From assembly GCF_001194135.2 (NCBI RefSeq), contig NC_068981.1:126103569-126147282 (forward strand): 43,714 nt of DNA. Reading direction: 5' to 3'. Below are positions 2,134-35,279 of this stretch, in pieces. Under the pieces are notes generated by a model that was not told where the DNA came from, searched no databases, and saw only the letters and a list, made by a program, of their open reading frames with translations. Source of the stretch: Octopus bimaculoides (Eukaryota). Both the position numbers and the translations under genes were made by a program. Every line of letters starts with the position of its first letter. The stretch's first letter is position 1.

Positions 2134-2525
2134 TTATATTGAGATTAGTGCTTCAGAGTCTTTAAATATTGTAAGAACACCTCCTACTAAGTAAAGGCTA
2201 CCAGTTACTAAGATTTGGACATGATCAGCTTCTTCCAGTATTGATGGCATTGATGGTTGAATAGAGAGACGTTTATTTAAAGCTTTATCTTTGCCTTGAC
2301 TACACCAAAATATGCAGTCATGGATACTTTCAAAAACATGCGTTTCAGATTCTGCTACGACATCTGAATTTGGTTGTTGATTAGGTTCATTATATTTATT
2401 ATTATTATTAAGAAATTTGTCTTTGTCTCCACAGCTTCTGTTACACTGAAGATTTCTCCAGAAATTTTCATTTGTCTGGCAAACTTTGTTGGCATCATGT
2501 GTAGTAACAGCAAGCTTTAATTGAT
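2134..2525 (-). CDS. FPGS: FPGS last coding exon (392 nt including TAA)
   Basis: ttattcag|AT CAA...; (D)QLKLAVTTHDANKVC...VFESIHDCIFWCSQGKD...HVQILVTGSLYLVGGVLTIFKDSEALISI*. Confidence 0.96.
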
Positions 2526-3410
2526 CTGAATAAAAAGGACAAAAATAAAATATACACATAAACAAAACTTAATTTTTATGTAAATTTCATCATAATTTTC
2601 AGTTTTCTGTTTAGAAATATTACTTCTGTAAATGTTTATATTTTTAAGGCTCTTTAGTGGTTAAAATTAGATGGAAAGATTTAACTAGAGGTACACCAGG
2701 TCATTTCTGCAAATCCAAATACATTGAATGCATAAAATAATATGAAGTGAGGTACCAGTCTTGAACTACACGTTTCATAATAATTAAGTTAATGTTAACA
2801 TATCTAACACAGCATTAAAAAGCTAACTATTAATACTTTTGTGATCAGTGAGAACAAAAGAACATTATTAGTCAATGACTGACATTGTTTTCGTTTCCTT
2901 TGTGTCTGTTCTTTTATGTTCCAAATATAGATCTTGTAATAATGGTTTTCACTTTCATCCTTTCAAGTTTTATAAATGCCAGTAATACAATGAATTCAAT
3001 TTAATCTACTATATCACATTTATCTCTTTTAAAATCTAATTATCTGAAAACAAATCCTACATTTAAAAGAATGTTTACTGATTTAAAACTAGCAATAATT
3101 ACAATATGTTCAAAAGCTCTAGGTACTATGATAAACAAAACACAGACAAAATGTTCTTCCATACTAGACTGAATGCAAAACTACACTACAAATTCAAATA
3201 TAATGGAATACACAAGCAGTTATCTGATTTAACTCTAACATTGCATATCTGAGGTTGTGGGACCTAACAGATCTTCAGTTAGCTTACTTGATCTATCTGA
3301 TCTACAAATGTTGGTTAACACAACAGGTACTAAATAGAATTATTGGATATGACCAATTATGTGTTCCATTTATTTACTCAGAACATTTGACAATGAAATC
3401 ATAAACATAC

Positions 3411-3474
3411 CACATAAAACTTCCTCACTGTAGCATATATTGGGGGTAAAGACAGCCAGATCAAAGTTACACTC
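3411..3474 (-). CDS. FPGS: FPGS exon 12 (64 nt)
   Basis: ttttcag|GAG TGT...TGT G|gtatgt; ECNFDLAVFTPNICYSEEVLC. Confidence 0.94.
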
Positions 3475-4020
3475 CTGAAAAATAATTACATTTAAAAATA
3501 ATCTATTTCAATTTTGTTTCAGGTATTAGTGTTTTTAAAATATAGTTAAAAGCATACTTATATTGATGTCTGACAGAGTACATTTGGAAGGCAGAACATA
3601 ATTGATAATATCAATCAAGCACTTAACCACTGTATTATTTAATTAACACATGTAAAAATGAAAAGAAGGATCAAGCCCAGTTGGATTTGAACTCAGAAAC
3701 TCAAGAGAAGCAATTAAATATACTTTGTTTTTTCAACTCAAAAATTGATGTGAGGATAGGTGAACTCTCTAGAATATGTAACCAGATGCTACCAAATGGA
3801 TACAATACTCGGATATAATTGCTGAACTAACAATTAATTTTCTTAAAAGTAAAATTAATCAGTTTTCAAGATATATAATATCTTATAATAAAGTATCAGA
3901 GATGTACAGATTAGTTTACCCAGCCCAAATTAACTATCTTCACTGATTAAAATATTTTATCTTGGAAAGGCAGAAATAATGGAGAGCTGGACAAAATACC
4001 TTCCATTATTTAGAACTATT

Positions 4021-4230
4021 CAGGTGGTGAGCTGGCAGAATCATTAGCATGCTGGGCAAAATGCTTAGCAGCATTTTGTCTGTCTTTACATTCTGAGTTC
4101 AAATTCTGCTGGGGGTCAACTTCGCCTTTCATCTTTTCAGTGTCAAGAAATTAAGCACTGGGATTGATGTAATCAACTCACCCCTCCCCCAAACTTTCAG
4201 GCTTTGCACCTATAGTAGAAAAGATTATTT
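4021..4230 (+). mobile_element. tRNA-derived SINE (family C)
   Basis: A-box-like ggtgagctggcagaa, B-box-like gagttcaaattc, core gcctttcatccttt; many copies in the window. Confidence 0.8.
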
Positions 4231-4323
4231 AGACCCATTAATGTTCTATGAAAATGTATAAACACCACAACTCCTTGACTATGTAAGAAAATCTAAATAT
4301 TCCTATAGTGAAATAAAAATTAC

Positions 4324-4405
4324 CATTAGATGATCCAGTAAAGCAAGAGAGTTTCGTGCCCCTGTGATATTAAACATCAAAATTTTCACCACTTTTTGGT
4401 TATCA
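4324..4405 (-). CDS. FPGS: FPGS exon 11 (82 nt)
   Basis: atttcag|T GAT...CTA ATG|gtaatt; DNQKVVKILMFNITGARNSLALLDHLM. Confidence 0.93.
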
Positions 4406-5069
4406 CTGAAATAGAAAAAAATAAATAAATACAATTAAACTTTCAAAGACTCTTTTTATATATATTTCTTAATAAATGTACTGGGATCGATATAATCGAC
4501 TATAGTTCTCCCTTACAAGTTCAAAACTTTCATTTATGTTAAAAACTAATATTAATCACTACCAAAAGTCATTGGATTATCAAAAGTAACAGAGATTATT
4601 TAGTTTAATTTATGTTCTATCTTTGAATACTGGCATGAAACTGCTTTTGATAGCTCTGTTGTTGATGGAATAAATACCTGTTACATGCAGGAGGTGATTC
4701 GATCAATTGTGCCCTTCTCAAACAAATTTTAAACTTTGTTCCAAAATAAGAAGTCAATATTTCTTATTTCAAAGATGATCAGTGTAAAAAAAAAAAAATC
4801 TTTCTTAGGCCATAGGCTCATAAGGCCAGTTTCTTGGATTCTGTGGTGTATTTTATTTCCCTACCTGGATGGGATTCTAGTTCATCACAGGATTATTCAT
4901 TTTTGCCAGCTGAGTGGACAGAAGCAATGTGAAATGAAGTGTTTTACTCAAGAACACATTGCATCACCTAGTCCAGGAAACAAAACTACAATCTTATGAT
5001 CATGAGCATAATATCTTAACCACTAAGTCGTGTGCCTCCATAGTGATCAATGTAGACTAATAGAAATAA

Positions 5070-5207
5070 TAACGGTTTCAACTTCTGGCACAAGGCCAGC
5101 AACTTTTGGGAGGGAGTAAATCGATTACATTGGGGCCCCAGTGTTCAACTGGTACTTATTTTATTGACCCTGAAAGGATGAAAAACAAAGTCAACCTTGG
5201 TAGAATA
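5070..5207 (-). mobile_element. SINE family C, 3' part
   Basis: gaccctgaaaggatgaaaaacaaagtcaacc core in reverse orientation. Confidence 0.75.
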
Positions 5208-5284
5208 ATAATAGTAATAATAAGTTTCCAGCGAGTGGAGAGTGCAAACTAGTTGTTATTCTAGAATGAAAGTTTTATCTTATT

Positions 5285-5526
5285 CATCATCATCGTCGTT
5301 TAACATCTGCTTTCCATGCTGGCAAGCCAGTAGGCTGCACCAGGCTCCAACTGATCTGGCAAAGTTTCTACAGCTGGATGCCCTACCTAACGCCAACGAC
5401 TCCGAGAGTGTAGTGGGTGTTTTTACGTGCCACTGGCATGAGAGCCAGTCAGGCAGTACTGGCATCGACCACACTCAAATGGTGCTTTTTACGTGCCACC
5501 AGCACGGGAGCCAGTCAGGTGGCACT
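5285..5526 (-). mobile_element. Family A (RTE 3' end) copy
   Basis: (CAT)n tail then the family A body; shares an internal block with the copy at 41073. Confidence 0.8.
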
Positions 5527-6217
5527 ATACATATATATGCAAAGAGAGGAGTAATAAGGGCATATTTCAAGATGCTATGCCACACAGAAGAGATGACACA
5601 GGGCTATGTTGATAAGGTAAGTTATTGTATAGCAAACCCATCCATCCTGTGCCAATGTAAATGTTAAAACAGTGATCAAGAATAAGCCAAATAATTTATT
5701 TATGTTTCCTTCGTCAAGTATTTTCCATTATGGTTATTATCAGAATTAGCCACCTGTTAGAAATAGCTACCAAATACCCCTCAAACTACACACTGTCATC
5801 TTATCAAAAAACTCATAGTAAAGTGTAGTCTAAAGTATCATACCTGATTAAATAAATCTAACAAGCTGCAGTCCACATCTTTCTCTGCAACTTTGGCAAG
5901 TTTTACAGAAACACTGCTCTTAAAAAATATTACTTGATTAAGTTTTACTTTCTTACAGATAAACATTAAAGCCCAATATTTAGAGGAACAAGGAATGAGG
6001 TTTATGCTTTTCCCAACCCAAACATTAGCAGCATAAACGAAATATCATAACATTTAGAGTCCGTCAGAAACTCAGTTTTCTAGGAGATTACCAATGCTTT
6101 ACATCACTGACCACTGAAATAAGAACAAACTGGAAACAAGTGATAGCAGACAAATCTCATTTCAGATCTCATTCTACTGTTTTAAGAACAGGCATATTGG
6201 ACAATGTAACTCTAGAT

Positions 6218-6545
6218 TATCATCATCATCATTTAACATCTGGTAAGGCCAGTGGCTGCATTCTGACATGGTTTTGTAATGCCAACCACTCCACAGAGTA
6301 TACTGGATGTTTTTTATGTGGTACCACCACCAGTACTTTTGATGTGACATCATCATAAGTGCTTTTTATGTGGCACCAGCACTGGTATCAATTCTGGTGG
6401 ATGAGTCTTTTTGAGTATAGCAATGTGCCAGATATCTGAGTTCTGAGTCACCTCCTTTGTAAGACTCGGTGTCATGAGATTGGCCTTCAATACTTCATCC
6501 CTTGTCTTCCTGAGTCTCCCTCTTCCACAAGTTCCATCCACTTAA
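6218..6545 (-). mobile_element. Degenerate RTE 3' end with C-terminal coding remnant
   Basis: ORF-track peptide DGTCGRGRLRKTRDEVLKANL matches the RTE C-terminal GRGRPRKTW motif; (CAT)n tail. Confidence 0.75.
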
Positions 6546-6817
6546 AGTGATCAGCACTTCTGCATGTGACTGTCTACATCTATATGCATCACATGACCAA
6601 ACCAGTACAGTCTTGCACACTGCATCTAATTCCTCTTATGCCCAACTTTTTTCCTTCAATACACTAATGCTCTGTCGAACATGTACACTAACATTGCATA
6701 TCCAGCAGAGCATACTAGCTTCATTCCTCTCTAGCCTTCATATGTCTTCTGCATTCAGAGCCTCCATCTCAAAAGGTACAAATTAGAATATTAACATAAA
6801 GATATAATGGAACTTAC

Positions 6818-6870
6818 GATAAAAGTCTGATCTCTTCAGCTGACTTTTTTTTAAACCATTCACAGCACAA
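6818..6870 (-). CDS. FPGS: FPGS exon 10 (53 nt)
   Basis: tttacag|TTG TGC...TTA TC|gtaagt; LCCEWFKKKSAEEIRLL(S). Confidence 0.92.
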
Positions 6871-7069
6871 CTGTAAAAAATATGTAACAAAATTATACAA
6901 GGATATAGAAGAAGAATTTGTGATTAATGTTGTTTAGCCTTAGGTTGGCTTTGATGGAATAGCCATGACTATTCCATCTATTTTCAGTCAAAGTTGCTCT
7001 AAGACCCACTATCCAACATGTCTTCCCTATTTTATGATGATAAGTATGATTTAAAGGAGTTCTGGCTAC

Positions 7070-8230
7070 TATTTCTTGCAGGCCAAGCATAATAAGGTGC
7101 CAACTGCAGGAGAGGTATTTAGCTAGAAGTAAGCCACTATACCTATCATTCATTAACTTAGAGAAGGCCTTGACAGCATTCCACATTCTCTAACCTGGTG
7201 ATCTTTAAAAAAAGTAGGTGCAGGTAACTGATTTGTGAGAGACTATTCACACCATGCAAGGTGAGAATTGGCAATGAGTGCAATGAGGAAATTAGCATGC
7301 AAACAGATGTCCATCAGGGTTTGCTTCACAGTCTTCTCTTGTTTACTAAAGCTTTCCAAGCCATAACAGGAGTTTAAGACAAACTGTTGATGATGATGTT
7401 CATGGGAACTACTGATGCTGATGAACAAATTCTCATAGCTGAATCTGTCAAAGATTCCATCCAAACATTTCAAAGTAAATCAAATAAAAGTCAAATAAAG
7501 ACAAAAGTTTTAGTTAGCAGGAAGATAGAATCTACTGCCATCTGGGAAGTAGCCATGCTTGATAATCAGAAAAAAGAGTAGTAGGCTGGAACCCCGTATG
7601 ATGTATCTAATGTAACTATGGATGCACAAGAGGTGAAGTGGGATCAGACAGGCTGACAGAGAAAGAGTGTTTGTATATTACAGATGTACAAGAATTGTTA
7701 GCAGAAAGAACACCCATCAAGTATCCTCTTTCAAGTGCATAAAAGTAGTTGACAGCTTCTGTTAGCAAGGTAACCTAATTAGCAATGATTCTGAAACTGG
7801 TGTTCAGAAAGCTTAGTAGCCATACTAAGAATAAGATGGAAAAAGTTTAGGAAGTTATTGCTTCTGCTAGTAAATGAAGGATTCTTTCTCCAGTGAAGGG
7901 TAGATTGTATGACACTTCTGTGCAAAATGTGATGTGTAGCAGTAAAACATGACTTTTGGATGCAAAAATGTACAAAAGTGGAAAAGAACTGAGGTGATCA
8001 TATTCTACTAGATGTGTAATGTTAGTGTGTATGGACAGTGGAGCACAAATGAGTTGAGAAGAAAATTGTGTAAAACAGGAATAAAATGTAGTGAGGAAGA
8101 AATTACACTGATATGGAAAAGGGATGTATATGGAAGCTGACAACTGGATAAAAAAAGTACCAAGGGATCCAAGTGGAAAGAACCTGCAGAAATGGAAAAC
8201 AAGGGAAGATATAGTGAAAGCAAATTTCTC
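7070..8230 (+). pseudogene. Decayed RTE LINE reverse transcriptase
   Basis: Frameshifted remnants LQERYLARSKPLYLSFINLEKA, VHQG, WELLxADE (YADD region) and IRWKKFRKLL. Confidence 0.8.
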
Positions 8231-8351
8231 AAAGAAATTGGCAAGTAGTATCTATCCATAGAAAAACATAAAATTAAGATGATAATGATGTAGCTGGAAA
8301 GTTTTGTGTACGAAAAACAAAAATCATATATCATACAGATATACAGTATAT

Positions 8352-9603
8352 ACATGAAATGTATCGAGCGGGATTGTTTGCCAGTGCCCCTGGACTGGCT
8401 CATGTGCGGGCGACACATATCTTTTGAGCGAGTTCGTTGCCAGTGCCCCTGGACTGGCTCTTGTGCGGGTGACACATGAAATGTTTCGAGCGGGATCGTT
8501 TGCCAGTGCCCCCGGACTGGCTCATGTGCGGGCGACACNNNNNNNNNNNNNNNNNNNNNNNNNNNNNNNNNNNNNNNNNNNNNNNNNNNNNNNNNNNNNN
8601 NNNNNNNNNNNNNNNNNNNNNNNNNNNNNNNNNNNNNNNNNNNNNNNNNNNNNNNNNNNNNNNNNNNNNNNNNNNNNNNNNNNNNNNNNNNNNNNNNNNN
8701 NNNNNNNNNNNNNNNNNNNNNNNNNNNNNNNNNNNNNNNNNNNNNNNNNNNNNNNNNNNNNNNNNNNNNNNNNNNNNNNNNNNNNNNNNNNNNNNNNNNN
8801 NNNNNNNNNNNNNNNNNNNNNNNNNNNNNNNNNNNNNNNNNNNNNNNNNNNNNNNNNNNNNNNNNNNNNNNNNNNNNNNNNNNNNNNNNNNNNNNNNNNN
8901 NNNNNNNNNNNNNNNNNNNNNNNNNNNNNNNNNNNNNNNNNNNNNNNNNNNNNNNNNNNNNNNNNNNNNNNNNNNNNNNNNNNNNNNNNNNNNNNNNNNN
9001 NNNNNNNNNNNNNNNNNNNNNNNNNNNNNNNNNNNNNNNNNNNNNNNNNNNNNNNNNNNNNNNNNNNNNNNNNNNNNNNNNNNNNNNNNNNNNNNNNNNN
9101 NNNNNNNNNNNNNNNNNNNNNNNNNNNNNNNNNNNNNNNNNNNNNNNNNNNNNNNNNNNNNNNNNNNNNNNNNNNNNNNNNNNNNNNNNNNNNNNNNNNN
9201 NNNNNNNNNNNNNNNNNNNNNNNNNNNNNNNNNNNNNNNNNNNNNNNNNNNNNNNNNNNNNNNNNNNNNNNNNNNNNNNNNNNNNNNNNNNNNTCATGTG
9301 CGGGCGACACATGAAATCTTTCGAGCGGGATCGTTGCCAGTGCCCCTGGACTGGCTCTTGTGCGGGTGGCACATAAAAGACACCATTTCGAGCGTGGCCG
9401 TTTTCGTGTCGGTGACACGTAAAAGCACCCACTACACTCTCTGAGTGGTTGGCGTTAGGAAGGGCATCCAGCTGTAGAAACTCTGCCAAATTAGATTGGA
9501 GCCTGGTGTTGCCATCCGGTTTCACCAGTCCTCAGTCAAATCGTCCAACCCATGCTAGCATGGAAAGCGAACGTTAAACGATGATGATGATGATGATGAT
9601 GAT
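8352..9603 (+). mobile_element. Family A element with a tandemly amplified ~60-63-bp unit, spanning a gap
   Basis: Unit tttcgagcgggatcgttgccagtgcccctggactggctc(a/t)tgtgcgggcgacacatgaaat occurs 3 times before and again after the gap; (GAT)n tail at about 9579-9603. Confidence 0.85.
8539..9293. other. Assembly gap (755 N)
   Basis: N run. Confidence 1.
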
Positions 9604-9632
9604 TGATGTAGAATAAAGTGAATTCAACAAAC

Positions 9633-9730
9633 CTTTATACTGTCTTCATTATGTGCACCATCAAGATAATAAGTTATGTTGTGTCTTTTTACAACCTGTA
9701 CACGTCCCAACCATTGGTTTGATGTAAGAG
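9633..9730 (-). CDS. FPGS: FPGS exon 9 (98 nt)
   Basis: ttcacag|CT CTT...ATA AAG|gtttg; (A)LTSNQWLGRVQVVKRHNITYYLDGAHNEDSIK. Confidence 0.96.
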
Positions 9731-9922
9731 CTGTGAATATAATGCGATATAATTTTTACAAAAATATGAGTGCTACTTTTTACCAATAAAACATTTATAG
9801 TTCAAATTGATAATAAATGTTAGCAATTGTCTGTGGTGTAATTAGTAATACAGTCATATATAAGCAATTTATTAAAATAATCACAGATGATACTGAAATA
9901 ATAAAAATGAAGTTATAATTAC

Positions 9923-10024
9923 CTTCAATGACTTTATTAACGTCTTCAACAACAGGGTCAAGAACAGGAATGGTTTCCTTACTGTCTTCAAATTCTTGCA
10001 ATGCAACTTTGCAAGTTGTGTCTC
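9923..10024 (-). CDS. FPGS: FPGS exon 8 (102 nt)
   Basis: tttatag|GA GAC...GAA G|gtaat; (G)DTTCKVALQEFEDSKETIPVLDPVVEDVNKVIE; phase 1 at both ends fits its neighbours. Confidence 0.88.
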
Positions 10025-10946
10025 CTATAAATAGAAGTTTTATAGGTTTATCACAACGTATATAAAGTTATGCAATTTTCAGGATTTTATAGAGTTTTTA
10101 GAAGTATTTAAAAATCCAATTTTACCAACTTGTATTAAACATATTTATGTGTGTGAAACCACTGCCACTTCCTGTTTGTTTATTTGTATTGTTTGAAATG
10201 TTGTAATATTCTACTTTTTTTATTGCATTTTTATGGGTTAGGCAATGCCCATGACTGTTTTCAAGGCCTCTGAGAGTAATGGGAAAATGAAAGGAAGAAA
10301 ACATGTTCCAAATGTTATCATGTACATCGTAGATCACTAGACCCAAATGCTTGCAACAGAGTGGAGCCTGCTAAAGGAACCCAAGGGTCAAATGGTACTG
10401 TTAAATATATGAAAATTATTATTGTTGTTGTCATTATTTTTATTCTTTGTATTGCCCAAATTGGAAGATATAAACGAGACTTTGTTTTCTGAATGTTTTA
10501 AGGCTTTAAAAAAGAAATTATTGTTCTTATCATTCCAATTCATTTGTTATAGTTCAAAATTGTTTTAGAATTTCTTATTGACTGTGTTTATTCTTAGCTA
10601 ATTTTTGAAGTAGTTATTATCAGTTTCTTTGTATTCTTTCTGGACAAAGTTCAGGTTGTCAGTATGTCAATGTAAATTATAAAACAGTTACAGGTTCCAT
10701 TTGTCCATACCCCAATATCATGTCTGTGTAAAATTTGCTTTTGAATTTTTTTCTTTTTTTGCTTTTTATCATCTACATCCTGGTACTACTAAGAAACCTA
10801 AATTATCAATTACTTGAAACCTATATTTTTGATATTGATAGATTAGAGTTAGTTATGATATGGTTATTCCTTTTGGATCAACATTTTGCAGCCACTATTT
10901 CTCTATAAAAATCTCTTTTGTCTATAAATTTCAGTATTTGACTATC

Positions 10947-11172
10947 TTAGCTCTTTAACATTTAAACCAGCCTTATCTGACCGTATCATATTCTATCTGT
11001 TTTAGTTCAAACCAGCCAGATCTGGACTGTCACATCAATGCTACATTGTCATTCTAAAAATAAACAATAACGTCAATAAGATCTTGAAACTACATGATGC
11101 ATCATCAATTCAAAGCAATGTGAATAAATACACATTATGTTTGATAGAATAATCGAAATGCTAAAGGGTTAC
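10947..11172. mobile_element. Short non-autonomous DNA transposon with piggyBac-like ends
   Basis: Degenerate terminal inverted repeats ttagctctttaacat ... atgctaaagggttac, resembling TTAA-CCC...GGG-TTAA. Confidence 0.5.
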
Positions 11173-11458
11173 CTGTCTCTCAAACTACTCTTTATATTAT
11201 ATCTTTTTGTAAACCTCAAATTGATATCATTCTAATCATGCTCTAGGTTATTCCAATTTAATCTGGCAGAAAATAAAATGATATATAAGTTTTTCACTTT
11301 TTGCAAGATATAAATCAAGCTACACATTCTTCAGTACTTAATGTTTCACCTCTATAAAAAGCCATATCTCCTATGATTGAAATGAAGGCTGTCATAATCT
11401 TTATAGGAGACACATCTAGTACATCTTACCACACTTTATTTAACAAATGACAACTAAC

Positions 11459-11603
11459 CTCTGTTGTTTTGATCCATCCATATCCTGGATAATTGAATAG
11501 CCAATGCCATATTTTCATATTCAAATGGTTCTTTATTGTAAAATGCAGGATTTTCTTTGACTATCTCATAAGATGAAAATGGAGGCGATAAATACAAACT
11601 ACA
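11459..11603 (-). CDS. FPGS: FPGS exon 7 (145 nt)
   Basis: ttttcag|TGT AGT...AGA G|gttag; CSLYLSPPFSSYEIVKENPAFYNKEPFEYENMALAIQLSRIWMDQNNR. Confidence 0.93.
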
Positions 11604-12549
11604 CTGAAAAATAGTCATACAAATATATATAAACATACCAAACCATCAAATATTAGATACTTCAACAATGATACAATATAAACATTTAGGAGGGAAATAA
11701 GTCAATAGATTAAACATTAAAAGCTTTAGAGTTGCAAAATTTATCCAAATAACTAACACTGTGGCTTTTCTTTGTCCCAGCAACCTGTATAACAAAGCTT
11801 TCGTTGGTATGCTATCCAATTAACCCTTTAACCCAAACTTCACCAACAGACAGTTGTTTCATACAGAATTGATCTTAAACATGTTTTATTGTTTCAGTTG
11901 GAATCATAATGCAAAAAGTTTTCTATAATTCTTTCCATAATATTGTTTATAAATAACTTAACATGATAGATGTACAAAGTTCAGATACAGATGTATCTGA
12001 TATATGTTGTACCTCTATTCACAGAGCAATACTTCAATCTACCAATACAGTTACTTCAGTATAACCTAAATAACAACATCACTTCTCTTTTACTCACTCT
12101 CATATGAAGAACAAGGGTTCAAATTGCTAAATTCTTCATTCCTTATAGCAATTGAACTTAAACTCTTATTAACTAGTTTTAGAAAGCAAACAAAGGGAAT
12201 GGGGATTTCCACTTTCGCTTGACCAAACCAATAAAAAGAACTACCTAGTTTTGTACACTGAATTAAGATAATGGATTTTGCTTAAGAACCCAATAAATAG
12301 TTCTGGTCACATGTGAACTTATGAACTTGGCAGTGTGTTGGCCCATGCCTTCACACGTAACTCCGATGTATCTATGGATAGAATATTATGTGAATGCACA
12401 GTTAAGAATATAGATTTTGTAAATATGGGAAGAAGGATTGCATCATAAAAGAATCGATATTTACATGTTTGCACAGCACATTAATATAAAACGTTAATAA
12501 AATAATTATCCTATTTTAGTTTCAACTCCAACATTAATAAAATTTTTAC

Positions 12550-12627
12550 ATTTTTATCCGTGGCCGTCTGCTTCAAAACTTTCATTGCAGCTTCTTTCTG
12601 AGGAGCAGTAACAGCAATGGAACCTGT
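12550..12627 (-). CDS. FPGS: FPGS exon 6 (78 nt)
   Basis: tatttag|ACA GGT...AAA AAT|gtaaaa; TGSIAVTAPQKEAAMKVLKQTATDKN. Confidence 0.92.
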
Positions 12628-13710
12628 CTAAATACAAATCAAGATACACAGTTGGCTATTTTACAATGCTTAATTATGTTGGTAGATGATTGATTAAAGA
12701 ATTCTTCTAGTGACCAGCATGTGTTAATTTATTTTCAGGTGGAAAGATTCAATCAGTAAATAACACAAGCAATTACCATTTAATTCAGCCATCTATATTC
12801 CCACTTGTTCTCTCATTGAAAAGGAGGGGCTTGTACTTATAGCCGTTTTGGGTTTCTCTAAGCTGAGGAATGGGGATATTTAGAAGTTTGTGTAATAAAT
12901 GTTCAGTTTGAATTCTTGCAGTCTAGTAGTAGTAGTTGTTACAACGACAGTAGCATTAAACCAAGGGGTGTTTTATGCCTACCATCTAAATCAGGCATGG
13001 ACAGCCTTTTTTTAGGAAGCAGGCTACGAGATATGGTTCATAATCAGGTAGGCCACACTACTAAAAAAATCTGTGGTCACTTTTGTTAGGTGCATCATTC
13101 AGAAAGTTTTGTTGGCTGCATACAACCTGTAGGCCACAGTTTGCCCATGACTGATCTAAATAGTCAAGAGACTTGAATCCTAAGCAATGAATCCAGAAGA
13201 CTGACAAGAAATTAGTAAAGAATAAGGTGAGTATGATTTGTTGGTAAGTGAGTATTGGTACATTTAATGTGTGGAGCATTAGAAACTAAATTATGATAAA
13301 ATATGTAGTGAGAATAAAAAGAAAATTAGTCAATGATTAAATCATTTTTTTTCATTTTGCCAACAATTATGGAAGACCACTTTGGATATATTGTTGCTTA
13401 TTCAGGTATCCTCTAAAAATATAATTGCACCATAACTTGGCACTAAATAAATATATAGTAAAGTGTATTTGTTGTCATCAGAGAATAGACTCTTTTAGAA
13501 ATCAAATACACTCTGAATTTCAGAATTGTTTAATTTCTAAATAATTCTACAATTTGTTGGAGGTGCAATGTTAACTTAAAGAACAGTTAAAAAACAAGCT
13601 ATCAAGTAAAGCCATTGACTGATGACTACAAAGAGAGGCATCTCAATATATAATGCAAATCAAAATCATTAGTGCACCAGGCAAAATATTTAGTGACATT
13701 TTGTCTAAAC

Positions 13711-14112
13711 TTTTTACTCTTTTACTTGTTTCAGTCGTTTGACTGCGGCCATGCTGGAGCACTGCCTTTAGTTGAGCAAATCGACCCCAGGACTTATTCT
13801 TTGTAAGTCTAGTACTTATTCTATTGGTCTCTTTTGCTGAACTGCTAAGTTACGGGGATGTAAACACACCAGCATCAGTTGTCAAGCGATGTTGGAGGGA
13901 CAAACACAGACACACAAACACACATATATATATATACATATACATATTTACGACAGGCTTCTTTCAGTTTCTGTCTACCAAATCCACTCAAGGCTTTGGT
14001 CAGCCTGAGGCTATAGTAGAAGACACTTGCCCAACATGCCACACAGTGGGACTGAACCCAGAACCATGTGGTTGGTAAGCAAGCTACTTACCACACAGCC
14101 ACTCGTGCGCCT
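13711..14112 (-). mobile_element. tRNA-derived SINE (family B), near full length
   Basis: Reverse copy of the element at 40181: tRNA-like head, CORE-like ttgggcaagtgtctt block, central microsatellite, gtaaaagag tail. Confidence 0.85.
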
Positions 14113-14117
14113 ATCTG

Positions 14118-14250
14118 CATATTCTGAGTTCAAATTCTGCCAAGGTCAACTTTGCCTTTTATCCTTTCGGGGTTGATAAAATAAATAGCAGTTGAGCACT
14201 GGGATTGATGTAACTGACTTACCCACTCCCTGTGCCAAAATTTGAAACCA
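14118..14250 (+). mobile_element. SINE family C fragment
   Basis: gagttcaaattctgccaaggtcaactttgccttttatcctttcgggg. Confidence 0.75.
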
Positions 14251-14481
14251 ACATATAGTGGAAATGGATGAAAATAGGTGAAAATGTTGCATACATGGAA
14301 GATTCTCAAGCTAGAGGTAGAAAAGTGGAGAAGAAATAATAAGGGCAGGTTTAAGAGGACTGAACTTCACAGAAGAACAAATACAAATAGAAACGATATT
14401 TTGTAAAGCTGGCCTATTAATGCTAATTTTGAAAGATTTGTATTACCATGATAATGATGATGAAAATTGTGATGAACTTAC

Positions 14482-14721
14482 CTTGAAAATACCAGCTTTA
14501 TGTGCTGCAATGCTCTCTAAAGTATTACCAAGTACATTTACATGGTCAATGCCTAGATGTGTAATTCCACATACTACTGGGTTTTCAACAATGTTAGTAC
14601 AATCATAAAGACCACCAAGGCCAACTTCAATGACTGCCACATCTACATCTTCTTTGTGGAAAACATAAACTGCCATCAATGTGAGGAATTGAAAATATGA
14701 TGGCATTTGTTCCTTTTTTTC
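14482..14721 (-). CDS. FPGS: FPGS exon 5 (240 nt)
   Basis: cttttag|GAA AAA...TTC AAG|gtaag; [80 protein letters not shown]. Confidence 0.98.
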
Positions 14722-14865
14722 CTAAAAGAAAGAAAATCATTTTCATTATTAGTTACATGAATTTCAAGCAAATTTGATTAAAACAGAGATTTAAAGATAC
14801 AAAGAAGACAAATATACATACAAGAAAATATTTAACAATTTAAATATAAACTAAAATCTTCTTAC

Positions 14866-14971
14866 CAATAGCTGGTCATAGCAAATCCAAAAATATTTTG
14901 TGAAATCCTCTTTTGAAAGAGGAACCCCATTGATACGGATTCTTTCACGAACTTCAATCAGGTGTGGAGAA
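14866..14971 (-). CDS. FPGS: FPGS exon 4 (106 nt)
   Basis: ttttcag|T TCT CCA...CTA TTG|gtaag; SPHLIEVRERIRINGVPLSKEDFTKYFWICYDQLL. Confidence 0.98.
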
Positions 14972-15329
14972 CTGAAAAAAATACAAATGAAAATCAAAAT
15001 ATTAGCCCAGTTGAAACCAAAGTATCAGGATAACATAATCTCTTTATTTCATTTTTGTCATTACTTGAATTAAAAGAATCTTACTCTAAGGCAGTTAAAA
15101 CTGTTTCATGATTTACCCGTTATGCAAATACCATTTCAACTATTAAATATCTTAGCTTTCAAACCTTTGAATATTTTAAATGCATAAAAAGATTGAAATA
15201 ATTTGTTTTAACTTGTTGGTTCATATGCACCATGTATATTCATTGACGTCTTTGTCTTAATAGTCAATATGTAAAGGTTTCAATCAGCTTTGTACTTGCA
15301 GTTCTCCATACCGCAAAACACTAGTGTAG

Positions 15330-16172
15330 CTAGCAGAAGGTAAGGACCAGTCTACCATGAACAGTATTTTGCAGGGATGACAAATGATCACTGAAACCTT
15401 TTTTTCAGGTGCTCAATACCATCTCTCCTGCTCATCTTCCCTCCTGCACCCCTTTCCCAGTTCTCAGGGTTTGCATTATCAATGTAGGCACATTGAAAGG
15501 TAGGTCTAATGAGATTGTTAAAATGCTTGAATGGAGGCGTGTTGCTGTATGCTGTATCCAAGAAGTAAGGTGAAGAGGAGCTTCAGCCAGGTTCCACACA
15601 GGCAAGACACCTAAGTATAAAATCTTCTGGGAAGGTAACAGTGACGGGGTAGGTGGTGTGGGCATACTTCTTGCAGAGAAATAGGTGAATAAGGTCATAG
15701 AGGTAGTCAGAGTGAGTGATAAGGTGCTTAAGCTCAGACTAGTCTTGCAGAATAGCATAGCATCAATTATCTCTGCCTATGCTCCACAAGCAGGCCTACC
15801 AAATGAACAGAAGGACCATTTTTATGATATTCTTCTGCAGGCTACCTCTAAGACAAATGACAAGGATCTCATCTTTGTGGCTGGGGATTTCAATAGGTAT
15901 GTCAGACAACAGCACGGTATTTTCCATGGTGTACATGGGGGCCATAGGATTGGTTCCCAAAACGAAGACGTAACAAGGCTACTGGAGTTCTGTGATACAA
16001 AAGCCTATTGATCTGCAACACCAACTTCAGGAAGCCAACCAGCCTGCTGATAACTTACCAATCAGGTGGCTATGCTAGCCAGATTGATTACATTCTCAGC
16101 AGGATGCATGGTTGCTCTTAAATACAAAGACTCTCCCTGGTGAAGAATGTATAGCCCAGCATAGACTAGTCT
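15330..16172 (+). pseudogene. RTE LINE apurinic endonuclease fragment
   Basis: NVGTLKGR...CCIQEVR...GVGILL...ISAYAPQAGL...VAGDFN...SQIDYIL...QHRLV, with stops. Confidence 0.9.
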
Positions 16173-17049
16173 ATCTTTTCCAATATTCAGTTAGTTTCCA
16201 GTCCTCTATGTTAGCTAACTTTTTCTCAACTATAACTTCAATCTTTATACATTCCAATGTCATTGGCTGTTCACTAATACATCATGCTGAGAAAAAGAGA
16301 CATACAAAAAAATTCATCAAATTTAGCCTGAACACACTTGTACATGGTTATAGGAATTACTATAAAGGAACAGTATGCTAGACATCCCCCAAAATCTGTG
16401 AGTTCAAATTTTCAAACTGCCTTTAAACAAAGTATAGCATTTCTTTTAACCGTTTTGGTAGAAAATGAGTGCAGTTCTAGTTTCACAGATTTAGTGATTG
16501 GATGTAGATGGTATATCTTAAGATTAGAAAAGGTAAGAATTATCATCATACATTTTTATAAGGCTGGCAACAACTTGTATATCATGCATAGCTTTATGAT
16601 TGAATGTGTAGTTTTAGAGAGGACATTGTAAGTTAAAATTCTGCTGCAAAGGTTTAAATTTACAGATCCACCCAACCAACACCATAATGTAAAACATGGC
16701 AATTATGAGCCAACAAGAAAGCTTCTACATAGTCGCTTTATCAGCTAGAAAAAAGAGCCAAATATCCCTCAAATTAATCTCTACTTTCTTTAAAAAAAGG
16801 AAGGACGCATTTGACAATACAGTTTTAGATATACAAATACAGGTTGGTCAAGGCTGGGATGCCTGTGATCATAGGTCTTATTCAGTCAGGACAGACTTAG
16901 GGCTATAATAGCAGAATTACTATTAAAATAAGATGTTTTAGTAACGTCTGCAAAAACATCCTTTTCTCGTTGTTATTGAATAATTTTTAAACCAACATGC
17001 ATTGAAACACAATCAATGCATCAGAAGAATTTTGAAAATCAATTCTTAC

Positions 17050-17168
17050 CTAAAAAATCCAGTCTTGTATCCTTTATGATGTAAAATACTCTCAGTGTAA
17101 GCACAAGTTGATCCCTTGCCTTTGGTTCCAGCTATGTGAATCACTGATAATTTGTCCAAGTCTCCTAA
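17050..17168 (-). CDS. FPGS: FPGS exon 3 (119 nt, ATP-binding P-loop)
   Basis: tttccag|TTA GGA...TTT AG|gtaag; [39 protein letters not shown]. Confidence 0.98.
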
Positions 17169-20100: not shown

Positions 20101-20202
20101 AGTTAAATTAATGTCAGTCAAACATGATCTGACAAAGTTCAATTTGGCTTCAGGATCTTGTGATTTATTAGCTTGTAAAAGGTTTAGCTTTTTAATGGCA
20201 TC
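20101..20202 (-). CDS. FPGS: FPGS exon 2 (102 nt)
   Basis: tttttatag|GAT GCC...TTA ACT|gtgagt; DAIKKLNLLQANKSQDPEAKLNFVRSCLTDINLT. Confidence 0.92.
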
Positions 20203-23822: not shown

Positions 23823-25000
23823 ATCATCATCATCATCGTTTAACGTCCGCTTTCCATGCTAGCATGGGTTGGACGATTTGATTGAGGACTGGGGAAACCG
23901 GATGGCAACACCAGGCTCCAATCTAATTTGGCAGAGTTTCTACAGCTGGATGCCCTTCCTAACGCCAACCACTCAGAGAGTGTAGTGGGTGCTTTTACGT
24001 GTCACCCGCACGAAAACGGCCACGCTCGAAATGGTGTCTTTTATGTGCCACCCGCACAAGCCAGTCCAGGGGCACTGGCAACGATCTCGCTCGAAAACCC
24101 TATGGGAGCCAGTCAGGCGGTACTGGCAACGGCCACGCTCAANNNNNNNNNNNNNNNNNNNNNNNNNNNNNNNNNNNNNNNNNNNNNNNNNNNNNNNNNN
24201 NNNNNNNNNNNNNNNNNNNNNNNNNNNNNNNNNNNNNNNNNNNNNNNNNNNNNNNNNNNNNNNNNNNNNNNNNNNNNNNNNNNNNNNNNNNNNNNNNNNN
24301 NNNNNNNNNNNNNNNNNNNNNNNNNNNNNNNNNNNNNNNNNNNNNNNNNNNNNNNNNNNNNNNNNNNNNNNNNNNNNNNNNNNNNNNNNNNNNNNNNNNN
24401 NNNNNNNNNNNNNNNNNNNNNNNNNNNNNNNNNNNNNNNNNNNNNNNNNNNNNNNNNNNNNNNNNNNNNNNNNNNNNNNNNNNNNNNNNNNNNNNNNNNN
24501 NNNNNNNNNNNNNNNNNNNNNNNNNNNNNNNNNNNNNNNNNNNNNNNNNNNNNNNNNNNNNNNNNNNNNNNNNNNNNNNNNNNNNNNNNNNNNNNNNNNN
24601 NNNNNNNNNNNNNNNNNNNNNNNNNNNNNNNGTAAGAGCTCTCTAAACTTTGCCCAGGCTATTCTTATTCTAGCAGCTACACTTTCAGCGCACCCACCCC
24701 CACTACTAACTTGGTCACCCAGATAGCGGAAGATATCGACTACCTCTAGTTTTTCTCCCTGGAATGAGATGGAAGTTGTTTCCTGTTTGTTTACAGTGTT
24801 TATTGCACCTGAACATCTGCCACATACAAAAACTAACTTCGTAGTTAATCTGCCTTTGATATTGCTGCACCTCTTATGTGTCCATAGCTTGCACCGGGTA
24901 CATCTTATAGAGTTACTACCTACTCCTTTACTGCATACTGAGCAGGGCCATCTACCTGAAGGGGTTTGTGTTTTATCTACCTTCCTACTTATTAAGATTT
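23823..25000 (-). mobile_element. 5'-truncated RTE LINE inserted in the Tigger element
   Basis: Intact frame RWPCSVC...FRYLGDQVSSGGGCAESVAARIRIAWAKFRELL up to the gap, then family A 3' UTR and (ATG)n tail at 23823. Confidence 0.88.
24143..24631. other. Assembly gap (489 N)
   Basis: N run. Confidence 1.
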
Positions 25001-28290: not shown

Positions 28291-29044
28291 NNNNNNNNNN
28301 NNNNNNNNNNNNNNNNNNNNNNNNNNNNNNNNNNNNNNNNNNNNNNNNNNNNNNNNNNNNNNNNNNNNNNNNNNNNNNNNNNNNNNNNNNNNNNNNNNNN
28401 NNNNNNNNNNNNNNNNNNNNNNNNNNNNNNNNNNNNNNNNNNNNNNNNNNNNNNNNNNNNNNNNNNNNNNNNNNNNNNNNNNNNNNNNNNNNNNNNNNNN
28501 NNNNNNNNNNNNNNNNNNNNNNNNNNNNNNNNNNNNNNNNNNNNNNNNNNNNNNNNNNNNNNNNNNNNNNNNNNNNNNNNNNNNNNNNNNNNNNNNNNNN
28601 NNNNNNNNNNNNNNNNNNNNNNNNNNNNNNNNNNNNNNNNNNNNNNNNNNNNNNNNNNNNNNNNNNNAAAGGATTATCAATTTATTAATAAATTAATAAT
28701 TTTTACCAAGCCCTTCGGTATGTAAGAACCATTATTGGTGTGGAACTTATTTAAAAGTTCTTATACATTTATAAACAAAATTAAGGGATCAGCAAACAGG
28801 TTGCTTCACCACATACCGAAGTTCAGAAATAGCAGCTAAAAATGCTGAAACTGTGTGTGTATATATATATATATATATGACAGGCTTCTTTCAGTTTCCG
28901 TCTACCAAATCCATTCACAAGGCTTTGGTCAGCCCGAGGCTATAGTAGAAGACACTTGCCCAAGGTGCCACGCAGTGGGACTGAACCTGGAACCATGTGG
29001 TTCGTAAGCAAGCTACTTACCACCACACAGCCACTCCTACGCCT
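27826..29044 (-). mobile_element. SINE family B, split by a further insertion and a gap
   Basis: 3' half at about 27826-28050, 5' half at about 28879-29044. Confidence 0.85.
28291..28667. other. Assembly gap (377 N)
   Basis: N run. Confidence 1.
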
Positions 29045-29760
29045 AAATATTATTGTTTTTGTTGAATAAAATTTGTTGAAAAAAGCCGCAATAATTATGC
29101 ACCAACCCAATATCTTAGGTAACACTTTCAGAGAATCTCCTATCTATTGTGGGCTCACAATATTCAATAAAATATGGAGAAATGGCAGCCACAGAGGGTA
29201 TTATGTAATTGCTTTGCCGGCTAAAAATAGAACTTCTCCCATCTTAATAAAGGAAGGACAAAAGGTGCACCATGCCCCTGTATACACTGTCTGAAAATAA
29301 GATGAGATGCTCATGGCCAGAACACTCGAATGAGATTTGATCCGGAGCTTAACAACAACCTAGAAGAACACATTAGATCAGAGGCGTGGTTAGCTGGGTC
29401 AGCTGGCATGGGCCTAGTCTCTAATAGAAGCAAAGGGGTAACCCTTTGGTAAAATGAAAAGTTACTTATTCTTTTTAGAAATAGTTAAGATTTTATTTTC
29501 TGTAGTTGTTTGTAAGTGTCTCATATCCATTGTATGTATATGTTTATCCCCGTTACCCCTAAATAAATATCATATATTTAGCACTGGTTATTTAAGTACT
29601 TAATTTAAGTACAACGAGGCTGACAAACAAGTTTTGCGCGGACCTACGTAAAACTAACACAAATGTTTAATATAAATCGTTAACAATTCATATAATTTCA
29701 TATGAAACTTAGTCAAATGTGAATTATATACCTACTATTATGTAATAAATTATTGATTAC

Positions 29761-29775
29761 CTGGTAATTAAGCAT
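29761..29775 (-). CDS. FPGS: FPGS alternative first coding exon 1b (MLNYQ; probable cytosolic isoform)
   Basis: AAA ATG CTT AAT TAC CAG|GTAATC, phase 0, giving MLNYQ-DAIKK, like human MEYQ|DAVR (recalled). In-frame TAA at 29788-29790 upstream. Confidence 0.75.
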
Positions 29776-30556
29776 TTTTAAAATCAATTAATACTGTTGC
29801 ATTGTCGAAGGTGACGTGTTAGGATTAGCGCGCTTCACATTCAAAACAATATTGACTTCATATAAATATTCCATTAACTATTGTTCAGGTATTCCAGCCG
29901 TGACCATTACGACTTTTCCCAATGTGACTCCAAGAGCACATTATTCAACATCTGTTTTTAAGACGATAGGGTAGGATTTGACGGAGATTTGATAGCTATT
30001 TCTTGCAGGTTGAGCGCCTGAATAGATACTCATTGACTGACAGTCAAATGTTTTCATTCGCTCGTTCAATGAAATAAACATTAATTCCCTCCGAGACTAT
30101 AACTGTAGGAGGATGTCGTTAGAGAATTGTTTTTTTTTTTTTTTCTTTAAGGAACTATAAGTGTTTCAAAATTCGTTAAATGTTTTAATGATCTCTATCA
30201 AAAAGTATTTATGAAGGATTATAATCACAAATAGTAGACAAATAATGATCTCACTTAACAGGTTAGTGATAGACGTGAAGATGTGCCATGTTTTGTCTTC
30301 TCCGAAGAAGGGTGGTACCATAAACTTTGCTTTCTTCCTCCGGTTAATTTCTTCTCAATACATATCAATAACTTTTTTCTATTTATATTTTCCGAATAAT
30401 AATTAATTGTATTAAGTAATTCTAAAGTTTGTATTGAATAGTAATTTGGATAAGTTTTATAAATCATCTTAACACGTGTTAAGTAATGAATCGGAAACGG
30501 ATAGTAATACGACGGGCTTCTGCTTAGTCTTCGTCCGCTAATTTCCACAAACAAAA

Positions 30557-30775
30557 TATTCTTTTCTGCTCTAGGCACAAGGCCCGAAATTTTGAGGGAG
30601 GGGGCCCAGTCAATTAGATCGACCCTAGTACACAACTGGTACTTCATTTATGGACCCCGAAAGGATGAAAGGCAAAGTCGACCTCGGCGGAATTTGAACT
30701 CAGAACGTAAAGACAGACGAAATACCGCTAGGCATTTCACTCGGCGTGCTAACGTTTTTGCCAGTTCGCCGCCTT
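30557..30775 (-). mobile_element. SINE family C, full-length CpG-rich (young) copy
   Basis: Reverse complement aaggcggcgaactggcaaaaacgttagcacgccgag...gagttcaaattccgccgaggtcgactttgcctttcatcctttcgggg. Confidence 0.9.
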
Positions 30776-30921
30776 CCCACATACAAGATATTGATTCGTG
30801 GCTACAGCAGGAGACATCAGTCCAAGTCGCCGCGCTATGGGATCGAACCCAGTACCACGTGCGTGCAAAGCTCGCTTTTTAATTACGGAATAGGAGAGTT
30901 AAGCAAGTGATAAGTGGAATT

Positions 30922-31076
30922 GCAATGTTTTTATCAGTCTGAATATGCTTGGTGCTCGTTCGAACTGGAGGAACAAGCTACTCACTGCGCTTTATCACGG
31001 AGAATATATCTCGCTTGTTGACAAATGGTGTGTGTACACCTTTGCATCATGAATATTCGGACTGATAATAACATTG
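30922..31076. repeat. 155-bp fold-back with 25-bp inverted arms
   Basis: gcaatgtttttatcagtctgaatat (30922-30946) versus reverse complement of 31052-31076, gcaatgttattatcagtccgaatat; 23/25 match. Confidence 0.8.
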
Positions 31077-31102
31077 CTAGCTTTTTAAGTCTACGGTTAT
31101 GT

Positions 31103-31128
31103 CCGCCCCGCTCAGCGAGCAGACCAAT
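31103..31128. promoter_or_regulatory. GC box (CCGCCCC, 31103-31109) next to CCAAT (31124-31128)
   Basis: Two classic proximal-promoter motifs 15 bp apart in a CpG-containing patch between FPGS exons 1a and 1b. Confidence 0.35.
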
Positions 31129-31210
31129 GAGCAAAAGTATTTTCCAAGATTACACTATCTAATGCGATGCAGGTGATTTGGCTTCTATTTTGAGGAAAGA
31201 AAAGGAAAAA

Positions 31211-31893
31211 CGGCAGAATTCTGCTGTACGCAGGGCATATAACCCCTCATAATCTATTTCATTTTTTTTAATTTTCAGAAAACTTTTGCGAATTTGTGTT
31301 CTACACACAGGAAATCATACGAATATGCAAAAAAAAAAAATGTGTGATTTAAGTAGGTATTTAGTTTGTAGCGTACGCTTGAGGGAAATTCCTCTTCTCA
31401 CGTTGGCGCTCACGTTGAACAATACTGCAACCTAGCAGCTCACAGCGGATTCTTAACCCGCTCTAACTTTACCCATTATCTCCAGAGGTGATGTATCTCT
31501 CGCGAACGGAGCTAACGAACTACGCACTGACATACAGAGGGTTGCCGGGAGCAAACCCCATGAAATGAAAACCAAATAAACAACCATTGAATTGCATCCG
31601 CTTTGTAAGCCTCTTCGAGTTCCAGAATCTTGAGACTACAAAAAATAATTGTAATGGGAGAATGAGATGTTCCACAGGTATCAAGAACCTTCTAGTCCCA
31701 TTATAAGTTGTTATTTTCAGTACATCTCACGACCACCTCATACTGTCCTCGTTTGAAAAAGTTTTTTTTTTAATGCGTTGTCGTATGAATTTCCGCGTGT
31801 AGAACACAAATTCGCAAAAAATTTCTGAAAATTCCCCAAAAATGAAAAAGTTACGATCGGGTTATATGCCGAGCGTAAAGCAGAATTCTGCCG
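31211..31893. repeat. 683-bp fold-back (MITE-like) with ~130-bp inverted arms
   Basis: Arms 31211-31340 and 31762-31893 both begin CGGCAGAATTCTGCT and share ttttgcgaatttgtgttctacac; AAAAA on both flanks. Confidence 0.85.
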
Positions 31894-32601
31894 AAAAATC
31901 ATGCTAGTGGAGAAGGAAACGTGAAAGAGATGACGGCAGCAACAACAGTATGGTAAGGTTCCGAACTCCACATGGTACGAAAACAAAGAAAATAAAACTT
32001 CTGCAAATCGAGCAAATCTAATACTCCCCATAAAAGTATTAGAATGTGATTACTGTTTAAATTTTTAAGGAATAAAATTACATTTTACAATAACTACTAC
32101 AAACGTTGCATATGTCAACAAGGGAGCCCCATGTTGTTGTTAAACCTGCTTAAAATAGCATCAAATATCTTTAAAACTATGCCCCGCCGTCTTAAAAGTG
32201 AACGACGCAGTGGACAATGTAGTATTAGATAAACAAAAGTCGATCAAGGTTGGCCTGAGGATAATCATCAACAGCTCTACGAGTTTGTTTTAAGCCATAG
32301 GCATACTGGTCAGTTGTTGATGGACCTAATGCTAATATTTGTGCGCTGTGGTTGTATAAGGACCCCAAAACCATAATAAATGATAAAGTACTAGATGCAT
32401 GATACTGGAAGAAAAAAAGATGGGTGGCCATCACTGGAATGTTTTTGATCATGTCTGCTCCATTAGGGTCAACCTGAGTTCAGACAACAACCTCATTATG
32501 TCATAGATCTACATTACACATTTAACTAGTCAAACATCTCTCATTTCTATTGTTTACAACAATAACATTCACATCGACATAAATACAGTGTCATTACTCA
32601 C

Positions 32602-32865
32602 TTCATATGTTTTTCTGTAACTTTGTTCATGTCTTGATCCAATTTCTTTAGAAGAATCGTGTTCCATGGAGTGTGTTTTTAAACTGAATAATCGAACTGA
32701 CATGGTTGTGTAAATCCTCTGGCGGCAATACAAACAAGTAGGGGGTGTTGACACCGTGATCAACAGATGACACCAATATCTCTTTTGTTTTACTGGGGCA
32801 GTCTTCCAAAATTTGAATGCCGATTGGCCAGCCAAGTTAATTATATGGCGAGAAATTTGCTGCAT
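32602..32865 (-). CDS. FPGS: FPGS alternative first coding exon 1a, 88-aa leader (probable mitochondrial isoform)
   Basis: ORF MQQISRHII...SYRKTYE ends at GAA|GTGAGT (phase 0), giving KTYE-DAIKKLN. Residues 1-67 contain 10 K/R and no D/E. Confidence 0.8.
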
Positions 32866-34390: not shown

Positions 34391-35279
34391 NNNNNNNNNN
34401 NNNNNNNNNNNNNNNNNNNNNNNNNNNNNNNNNNNNNNNNNNNNNNNNNNNNNNNNNNNNNNNNNNNNNNNNNNNNNNNNNNNNNNNNNNNNNNNNNNNN
34501 NNNNNNNNNNNNNNNNNNNNNNNNNNNNNNNNNNNNNNNNNNNNNNNNNNNNNNNNNNNNNNNNNNNNNNNNNNNNNNNNNNNNNNNNNNNNNNNNNNNN
34601 NNNNNNNNNNNNNNNNNNNNNNNNNNNNNNNNNNNNNNNNNNNNNNNNNNNNNNNNNNNNNNNNNNNNNNNNNNNNNNNNNNNNNNNNNNNNNNNNNNNN
34701 NNNNNNNNNNNNNNNNNNNNNNNNNNNNNNNNNNNNNNNNNNNNNNNNNNNNNNNNNNNNNNNNNNNNNNNNNNNNNNNNNNNNNNNNNNNNNNNNNNNN
34801 NNNNNNNNNNNNNNNNNNNNNNNNNNNNNNNNNNNNNNNNNNNNNNNNNNNNNNNNNNNNNNNNNNNNNNNNNNNNNNNNNNNNNNNNNNNNNNNNNNNN
34901 NNNNNNNNNNNNNNNNNNNNNNNNNNNNNNNNNNNNNNNNNNNNNNNNNNNNNNNNNNNNNNNNNNNNNNNNNNNNNNNNNNNNNNNNNNNNNNNNNNNN
35001 NNNNNNNNNNNNNNNNNNNNNNNNNNNNNNNNNNNNNNNNNNNNNNNNNNNNNNNNNNNNNNNNNNNNNNNNNNNNNNNNNNNNNNNNNNNNNNNNNNNN
35101 NNNNNNNNNNNNNNNNNNNNNNNNNNNNNNNNNNNNNNNNNNNNNNNNNNNNNNNNNNNNNNNNNNNNNNNNNNNNNNNNNNNNNNNNNNNNNNNNNNNN
35201 NNNNNNNNNNNNNNNNNNNNNNNNNNNNNNNNNNNNNNNNNNNNNNNNNNNNNNNNNNNNNNNNNNNNNNNNNNNNNNN
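34391..35279. other. Assembly gap (889 N)
   Basis: N run. Confidence 1.

Follow-up and report, generated by a model that had tools for sequence, protein, structure and literature searches.

A conserved first exon and a putatively lineage-restricted alternative in the folylpolyglutamate synthase gene of Octopus bimaculoides

Two First Exons of Octopus FPGS

The first exons of the folylpolyglutamate synthase (FPGS) gene of Octopus bimaculoides were analyzed in a window of 43,714 nucleotides, which is the whole stretch of DNA under study (assembly GCF_001194135.2, contig NC_068981.1, positions 126,103,569 to 126,147,282 of the forward strand). The gene lies on the minus strand with 13 coding exons and GT-AG introns, and two alternative first exons, 1a and 1b, join a common exon 2. 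Judged by the comparison of octopod sequences, exon 1a is probably the ancestral exon, able to serve both mitochondria and cytosol, and exon 1b an extra route restricted to one lineage; this reading is held with modest confidence.

Under the proposed mechanism, exon 1a, which is conserved, would be the ancestral first exon; in it, a presequence-like leader is followed by the start codons M55 and M67. Initiation at M1 would give the mitochondrial form, and initiation at M55 or M67 would give one or more leaderless forms. As in the human gene, either leaky scanning or transcription that begins between the ATGs would decide which start is used. Exon 1b would give a leaderless, presumably cytosolic enzyme (isoform X2) that keeps Y-Q before DAI, and it would supplement the normal system and not separate two folate pools. 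In the lineage of O. vulgaris and O. sinensis, the same site is unable to encode 1b. Import of the leader and use of the internal ATGs are inferred here, as are a promoter of its own for 1b and the amount of 1b transcript. The features concerned are as follows (a slash marks an exon end).

32602..32865, minus strand: coding part of exon 1a, 88 codons, MQQISRH...YRKTYE; first exon of isoform X1
32863..32865, minus strand: ATG1 (M1), context tttcaATGc, weak (T at -3, C at +4)
32701..32703, minus strand: ATG of M55, context acaaccATGt, A at -3; aligns with M35 of paralog B
32665..32667, minus strand: ATG of M67, context cactccATGg, before the first acidic residue; start of the O. vulgaris model CAI9715162.1
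32596..32601, minus strand: exon 1a donor, GAA/GTGAGT, identical in four species
29788..29802, minus strand: upstream open reading frame (uORF) in frame with 1b, ATG CAA CAG TAT TAA (MQQY-stop), 4 codons
29761..29775, minus strand: coding part of exon 1b, MLNYQ; first exon of isoform X2
29755..29760, minus strand: exon 1b donor, CAG/GTAATC, 7/9 consensus positions, no G at +5
20101..20202, minus strand: exon 2, DAIKKLN...DINLT; common acceptor for 1a and 1b, phase 0, preceded by ttttatAG

The exons were located by a probe search and by a profile built from 62 animal FPGS proteins, which placed them from about 20.2 kb down to about 2.1 kb of the window. When exon 1a was chained to the 12 further GT-AG exons, the protein was identical to RefSeq XP_014782935.1 (isoform X1, 614 amino acids), and when 1b replaced 1a, it was identical to XP_014782936.1 (isoform X2, 531 amino acids). 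The coding sequence was complete and uninterrupted with either first exon. Isoform X1 is named "folylpolyglutamate synthase, mitochondrial isoform X1" in RefSeq, and its N-terminus is the exact 88-residue peptide of exon 1a, while the N-terminus of X2 is MLNYQDAIKKLN. The encoded protein belongs to the FPGS family, with a Mur_ligase_M domain carrying the P-loop GTKGKGS and an FPGS C-terminal domain (Mur ligase superfamily; PF08245 and PF27239 are on record for protein P0122), and shares about 56% identity with animal FPGS.

The original prediction, made from the nucleotide sequence, had located the ATG of exon 1a at 32865, with 88 codons ending in KTYE/GTGAGT at 32602, and exon 1b as MLNYQ/GTAATC from an ATG at 29775 to 29761, with an in-frame stop upstream, which is the TAA at 29790-29788. 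These positions and strings were correct, as were the spacing of about 2.8 kb (2826 nucleotides) and the phase-0 splicing of both exons to DAIKKLN of exon 2 at 20202. The existence of two alternative first exons with a common second exon was likewise borne out by X1 and X2, and the proposed role of 1a and 1b in separating the folate pools was not supported, as discussed below. The original prediction also knew of no description of the arrangement in molluscs. No paper describing the octopus FPGS first exons was found; both exons are already public gene models in RefSeq, and so they are not new as annotation.

The cluster of related proteins comprised X1, X2, the O. sinensis orthologue, two O. 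vulgaris models, and a second FPGS of O. bimaculoides and O. sinensis. When the actual N-terminal sequence was used as query, protein searches returned no octopus protein, and the only close match was an octopod genomic open reading frame (ORF), P0121. It took a low-coverage chimeric query, made of ORF pieces around exons 1b and 2, to bring up the RefSeq proteins. The impression that no close annotated relative existed was thus wrong, since this query retrieved RefSeq X1, and a negative of that kind from an N-terminal search is not to be taken at face value. Exact-sequence look-ups aimed at products derived from transcripts gave no record for the 98-residue read-through ORF, X2, X2 with a TTG start, or the proteins starting at M55 and M67.

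Exon 1a and Its Internal Start Codons

Four sequences were compared: the window, O. sinensis (L003), O. vulgaris (L004) and a fourth octopod represented by a Logan contig (L001). The last three were all colinear with the window, and L001 showed about 90% nucleotide identity. The exon 1a frame was open from M1 and the donor GAA/GTGAGT was identical in 4/4 sequences, with indels of only -12 and -3 nucleotides, both in frame. Compared with the fourth octopod, the ratio of nonsynonymous to synonymous substitution rates (dN/dS) of exon 1a was 0.33, with a deficit of nonsynonymous changes (binomial P 0.01); by part, the values were 0.4-0.58 over residues 1-53 and 0.1-0.24 over the remainder.

The leader of exon 1a contained no acidic residue over 67 amino acids, had a net charge of +6 in the first 30, and carried R-3-type motifs (RIY/T and RLF/S). 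The earlier description of the exon as an acid-free basic leader was right for residues 1-67 and failed for residues 68-88, which hold five acidic residues. Composition heuristics favor a resemblance of the leader to a mitochondrial presequence. The leader of human FPGS is similar in composition to that of octopus exon 1a. In the HMMER search with the exon 1a ORF, the matches besides the octopod genomic ORF P0121 were only two tandem-repeat proteins, which were read as artefacts made of many weak matched stretches; by this search, the leader is without detectable relatives outside octopods.

M1, M55 and M67 are in frame and were kept in all four species. In the alignment, M55 of this gene (copy A of a tandem pair) corresponds to M35 of paralog B within the pattern [KQ]RI..TM, indicating that M55 is older than the duplication. 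The context of ATG1 (T at -3, C at +4) was the same in all four species, and in each of them no ATG occurred in any frame between ATG1 and ATG55 or between ATG55 and ATG67; the shuffle P for the ATG-free interval from ATG1 to ATG55 was about 0.07. Because the two internal start codons are conserved, ATG1 is weak and no ATG intervenes, exon 1a could give both forms in the human manner, and leaky scanning is possible on its transcripts.

Several points weigh against the reading that 1a serves both compartments and 1b is an extra. A protein initiated at M55 would begin with MSVRLFSLKTHS, which itself bears some resemblance to a presequence. The O. vulgaris model CAI9715162.1 starts at M67; this start is weak evidence and only a hint, because the model wrongly fuses two genes and the pipeline behind it (EVM and PASA) mixes transcript, protein and ab initio evidence (PMC10700109). 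Furthermore, RefSeq keeps X2 on the chromosome-scale assembly. A model kept by the NCBI pipeline usually has transcript support, and 1b could therefore be a major source of the cytosolic enzyme in O. bimaculoides. In addition, in a comparison confined to these octopods, with no outgroup, a gain of 1b in O. bimaculoides and a loss of it in the lineage of O. vulgaris and O. sinensis fit equally well.

Exon 1b among Octopods

The orthologous site of exon 1b in O. sinensis and O. vulgaris reads ATG CTT AAT TAC TAA/GTAATC, compared with ...TAC CAG/GTAATC in O. bimaculoides. The fifth codon is thus TAA in both species (L003 12837-12839 and L004 12690-12692, respectively). Two substitutions in the junction codon account for the stop and for the loss of G at -1, in a donor that already had no G at +5. 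With a local divergence of 5-8%, the chance of finding two differences in a single given codon is about 1%. The site is therefore clearly unconstrained in at least one lineage. The expectation that relatives would maintain both exons was therefore borne out for 1a, in four octopod genomes, and not for 1b. Moreover, the O. sinensis orthologue is annotated as the 1a type only. The lineage of O. bimaculoides and that of O. vulgaris and O. sinensis split roughly 34 million years ago (PMC10700109).

This comparison bears directly on the model of the original prediction, in which 1a makes only the mitochondrial enzyme and 1b the cytosolic one, each from its own promoter, which would allow independent regulation of the two folate pools. 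Several observations agree with that model: RefSeq contains both isoforms and the window reproduces them, the 1a leader is presequence-like and 1b has none, the 1b peptide ends in a conserved Y-Q (chance about 0.05), and the 1b ATG has A at -3. However, O. sinensis and O. vulgaris still need cytosolic FPGS and carry the stop and weakened donor, and 1b cannot therefore be the general octopod source. The conserved internal ATGs of 1a and the ATG-free interval before them suit dual initiation, paralog B may share the work, a uORF lies directly upstream of the 1b ATG, and no conservation peak was seen at 1b. We regard this model as quite unlikely.

The conservation profile of O. bimaculoides against O. 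sinensis showed introns and exons alike, with about 5-8% difference and no peak at 1b. Since introns diverged about as much as exons, the level of conservation cannot pick out either first exon.

Exon 1b was also considered as a by-product, in which a weak intronic transcription start and a chance combination of ATG and donor were caught by annotation and yield negligible protein. Mini-exon candidates, defined as a phase-0 ATG with an open frame and a donor of at least 7/9 consensus positions, were counted in the intron between exons 1a and 2, which is 12.4 kb long. Seven were observed, compared with 6.3 +/- 2.5 in shuffles, and on sequence alone exon 1b is thus within chance expectation, about six such phase-0 mini-exons being expected in this intron. 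The donor without G at +5, the uORF upstream (its in-frame TAA closes the frame four codons before the 1b ATG), a substitution rate at 1b not below the intron background together with two changes in the junction codon, and the absence of 1b from the O. sinensis annotation also fit a by-product. On the other hand, the chromosome-scale assembly still carries the X2 model, the exon bases at the donor (CAG) match the consensus perfectly, and the peptide ends in a conserved Y-Q that matches human MEYQ/DAV and many other animals. Among the seven candidates, only 1b ends in Y-[E/Q/D], an ending found in about 5% of cases in shuffles (P about 0.05). A by-product is considered unlikely, and the reading of 1b as an added, lineage-restricted route is preferred.

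The ending Tyr-Glu/Gln is part of the conserved FPGS N-terminus, as in MEYQDAV of mammals and fish, TYEDAI of a wasp and TYQDAV of a sponge. Exon 1a (TYE) and the first exon of the paralog (SYD) end in the same manner as 1b (YQ). The X2 form is leaderless, keeps the conserved Y-Q, and has its first acidic residue at position 6. An origin of 1b as a duplicate of 1a was ruled out, as no significant similarity was found between the two, and a 1b-like sequence was not found in the intron of the paralog.

The Tandem Paralog

A second FPGS gene (copy B; proteins P0124 and P0128) occurs in O. bimaculoides, O. sinensis and O. vulgaris, outside the window. In O. vulgaris, its exon 1 lies at L004 46772-46939, about 11 kb downstream of where copy A ends. 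Its leader, MTFLRKLMKHSLSF..., is a shorter homologue of the copy A leader in which positions 15 and 21 are acidic. Furthermore, paralog B keeps the conserved internal Met, and SYD closes its first exon at the same boundary between exons 1 and 2. Any account of the supply of the two folate pools has to take paralog B into consideration.

The compartments might be split mainly between the tandem paralogs, with A mostly mitochondrial and B cytosolic or the reverse, so that the choice of first exon is secondary. Both copies exist in O. bimaculoides and O. sinensis as well as in the tandem O. vulgaris pair, and the shorter B leader with its two acidic residues would suit such a division. However, B has a homologous leader and a conserved internal Met, which is the same design as A, and a split of this kind appears very improbable.

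The O. vulgaris models CAI9715162.1 and CAI9715163.1 span L004 10001-96670. One model wrongly fuses both tandem paralogs into 1086 amino acids and starts at M67 of exon 1a. The second isoform starts with MPSYF in exon 5, downstream of the P-loop in exon 3, which suggests a transcript with a different, non-coding 5' end.

Comparison with Known Systems

The FPGS genes of mammals have been studied in this respect. In the human gene, a single exon 1 contains two ATGs in the same frame, and transcription starts there in two clusters; its long transcript encodes both forms while a shorter one encodes only the cytosolic form; alternative exon-1 variants 1A, 1B and 1C also exist (PMC1513244). Octopus exon 1a is similar, in that one exon carries both a leader and, downstream of it, an in-frame ATG, and is spliced to a common exon 2. 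In both, the cytosolic N-terminus starts just before the conserved Y-[E/Q]-D-A motif. Unlike the human exon, octopus 1a has three candidate starts (M1, M55 and M67), and O. bimaculoides has, 2.8 kb downstream, a coding alternative first exon that leads to a complete leaderless enzyme.

Mouse Fpgs is transcribed from two promoters separated by 10 kb, with A1a and 1 as the alternative first exons; the two promoters give tissue-specific isozymes of liver and dividing cells and no split between mitochondria and cytosol (PMC1513244). As in octopus, the mouse first exons lie kilobases apart and give distinct N-termini on a common body, but the alternative exon has no sequence relation to octopus 1b.

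SHMT2/SHMT2alpha is a case in which a first exon adds or omits a presequence. Alternative first exons also determine the localization of MsrA (PMC1431549). These two systems share the logic of the original prediction, one first exon with a targeting signal and the other without. They are backed by localization experiments, whereas the octopus case is known from sequence and gene models. Moreover, unlike these systems, octopus 1b is not conserved even within the genus.

Other Features of the Window

The remaining coding exons of copy A are listed below.

2134..17168, minus strand: coding exons 3-13, stop included; P-loop GTKGKGS in exon 3
17168-17050, 14971-14866, 14721-14482 and 12627-12550, minus strand: exons 3-6
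11603-11459, 10024-9923, 9730-9633 and 6870-6818, minus strand: exons 7-10
4405-4324, 3474-3411 and 2525-2134 (stop included), minus strand: exons 11-13

Four runs of N (assembly gaps or masked sequence) occur at 8539-9293, 24143-24631, 28291-28667 and 34391-35279; two of them interrupt the intron between exons 1b and 2, and another is found about 1.5 kb upstream of exon 1a. They give false long ORFs in every frame, and small exons could be hidden there. An (AT)n microsatellite (about 17194-17175) directly precedes the polypyrimidine tract and acceptor of exon 3. The intron between exons 2 and 3 holds the remnant of a mariner/Mos1-type transposase (17337-17765, plus strand; HTH_48, E = 2.5e-14).

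In addition, a dispersed repeat of about 220 bp with the tRNA-like motifs GGTTCGATCCC and GAGTTCAAATTCC was present at about 30900-30550, in the intron between exons 1a and 1b, and at 42789-42330. Several matches to it at 72-75% identity occur in the O. sinensis locus, and it is probably a short interspersed element. ARAGORN and Rfam gave no tRNA or Rfam call in the window, including at this repeat. The stretches 31750-31300 and 29050-28750 had no O. sinensis alignment, while the remaining intron aligned at about 90%, and probably represent insertions or deletions specific to one lineage.

Biological Meaning

The point made here is modest, because the addition or omission of a presequence by first exons is well known, and FPGS first exons have been described in mouse and human. 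Octopus FPGS is an ordinary, species-restricted case of a known mechanism. The labels "mitochondrial" for X1 and "cytosolic" for X2 are putative, and the arrangement should not be generalized to cephalopods.

Of mild interest is that a compartment-specific first exon may recently have arisen or vanished beside a tandem duplicate. A change from TAA to CAG before the GT, within the roughly 34 million years since the split, may have made a new coding first exon with its own start site, by which copy A would have gained a cytosol-only, separately regulated transcript; we put this forward tentatively and think it rather unlikely. The reverse is equally possible: 1b may have been ancestral and have disappeared from the other lineage once the tandem paralog had taken over. 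If true, the gain would put a date on the birth of a compartment-specific alternative first exon. Should 1b indeed be used, a simple genetic switch would let O. bimaculoides produce the cytosolic enzyme and not the mitochondrial one, and the gene would be an example of how rapidly such a switch can appear or disappear between close species.

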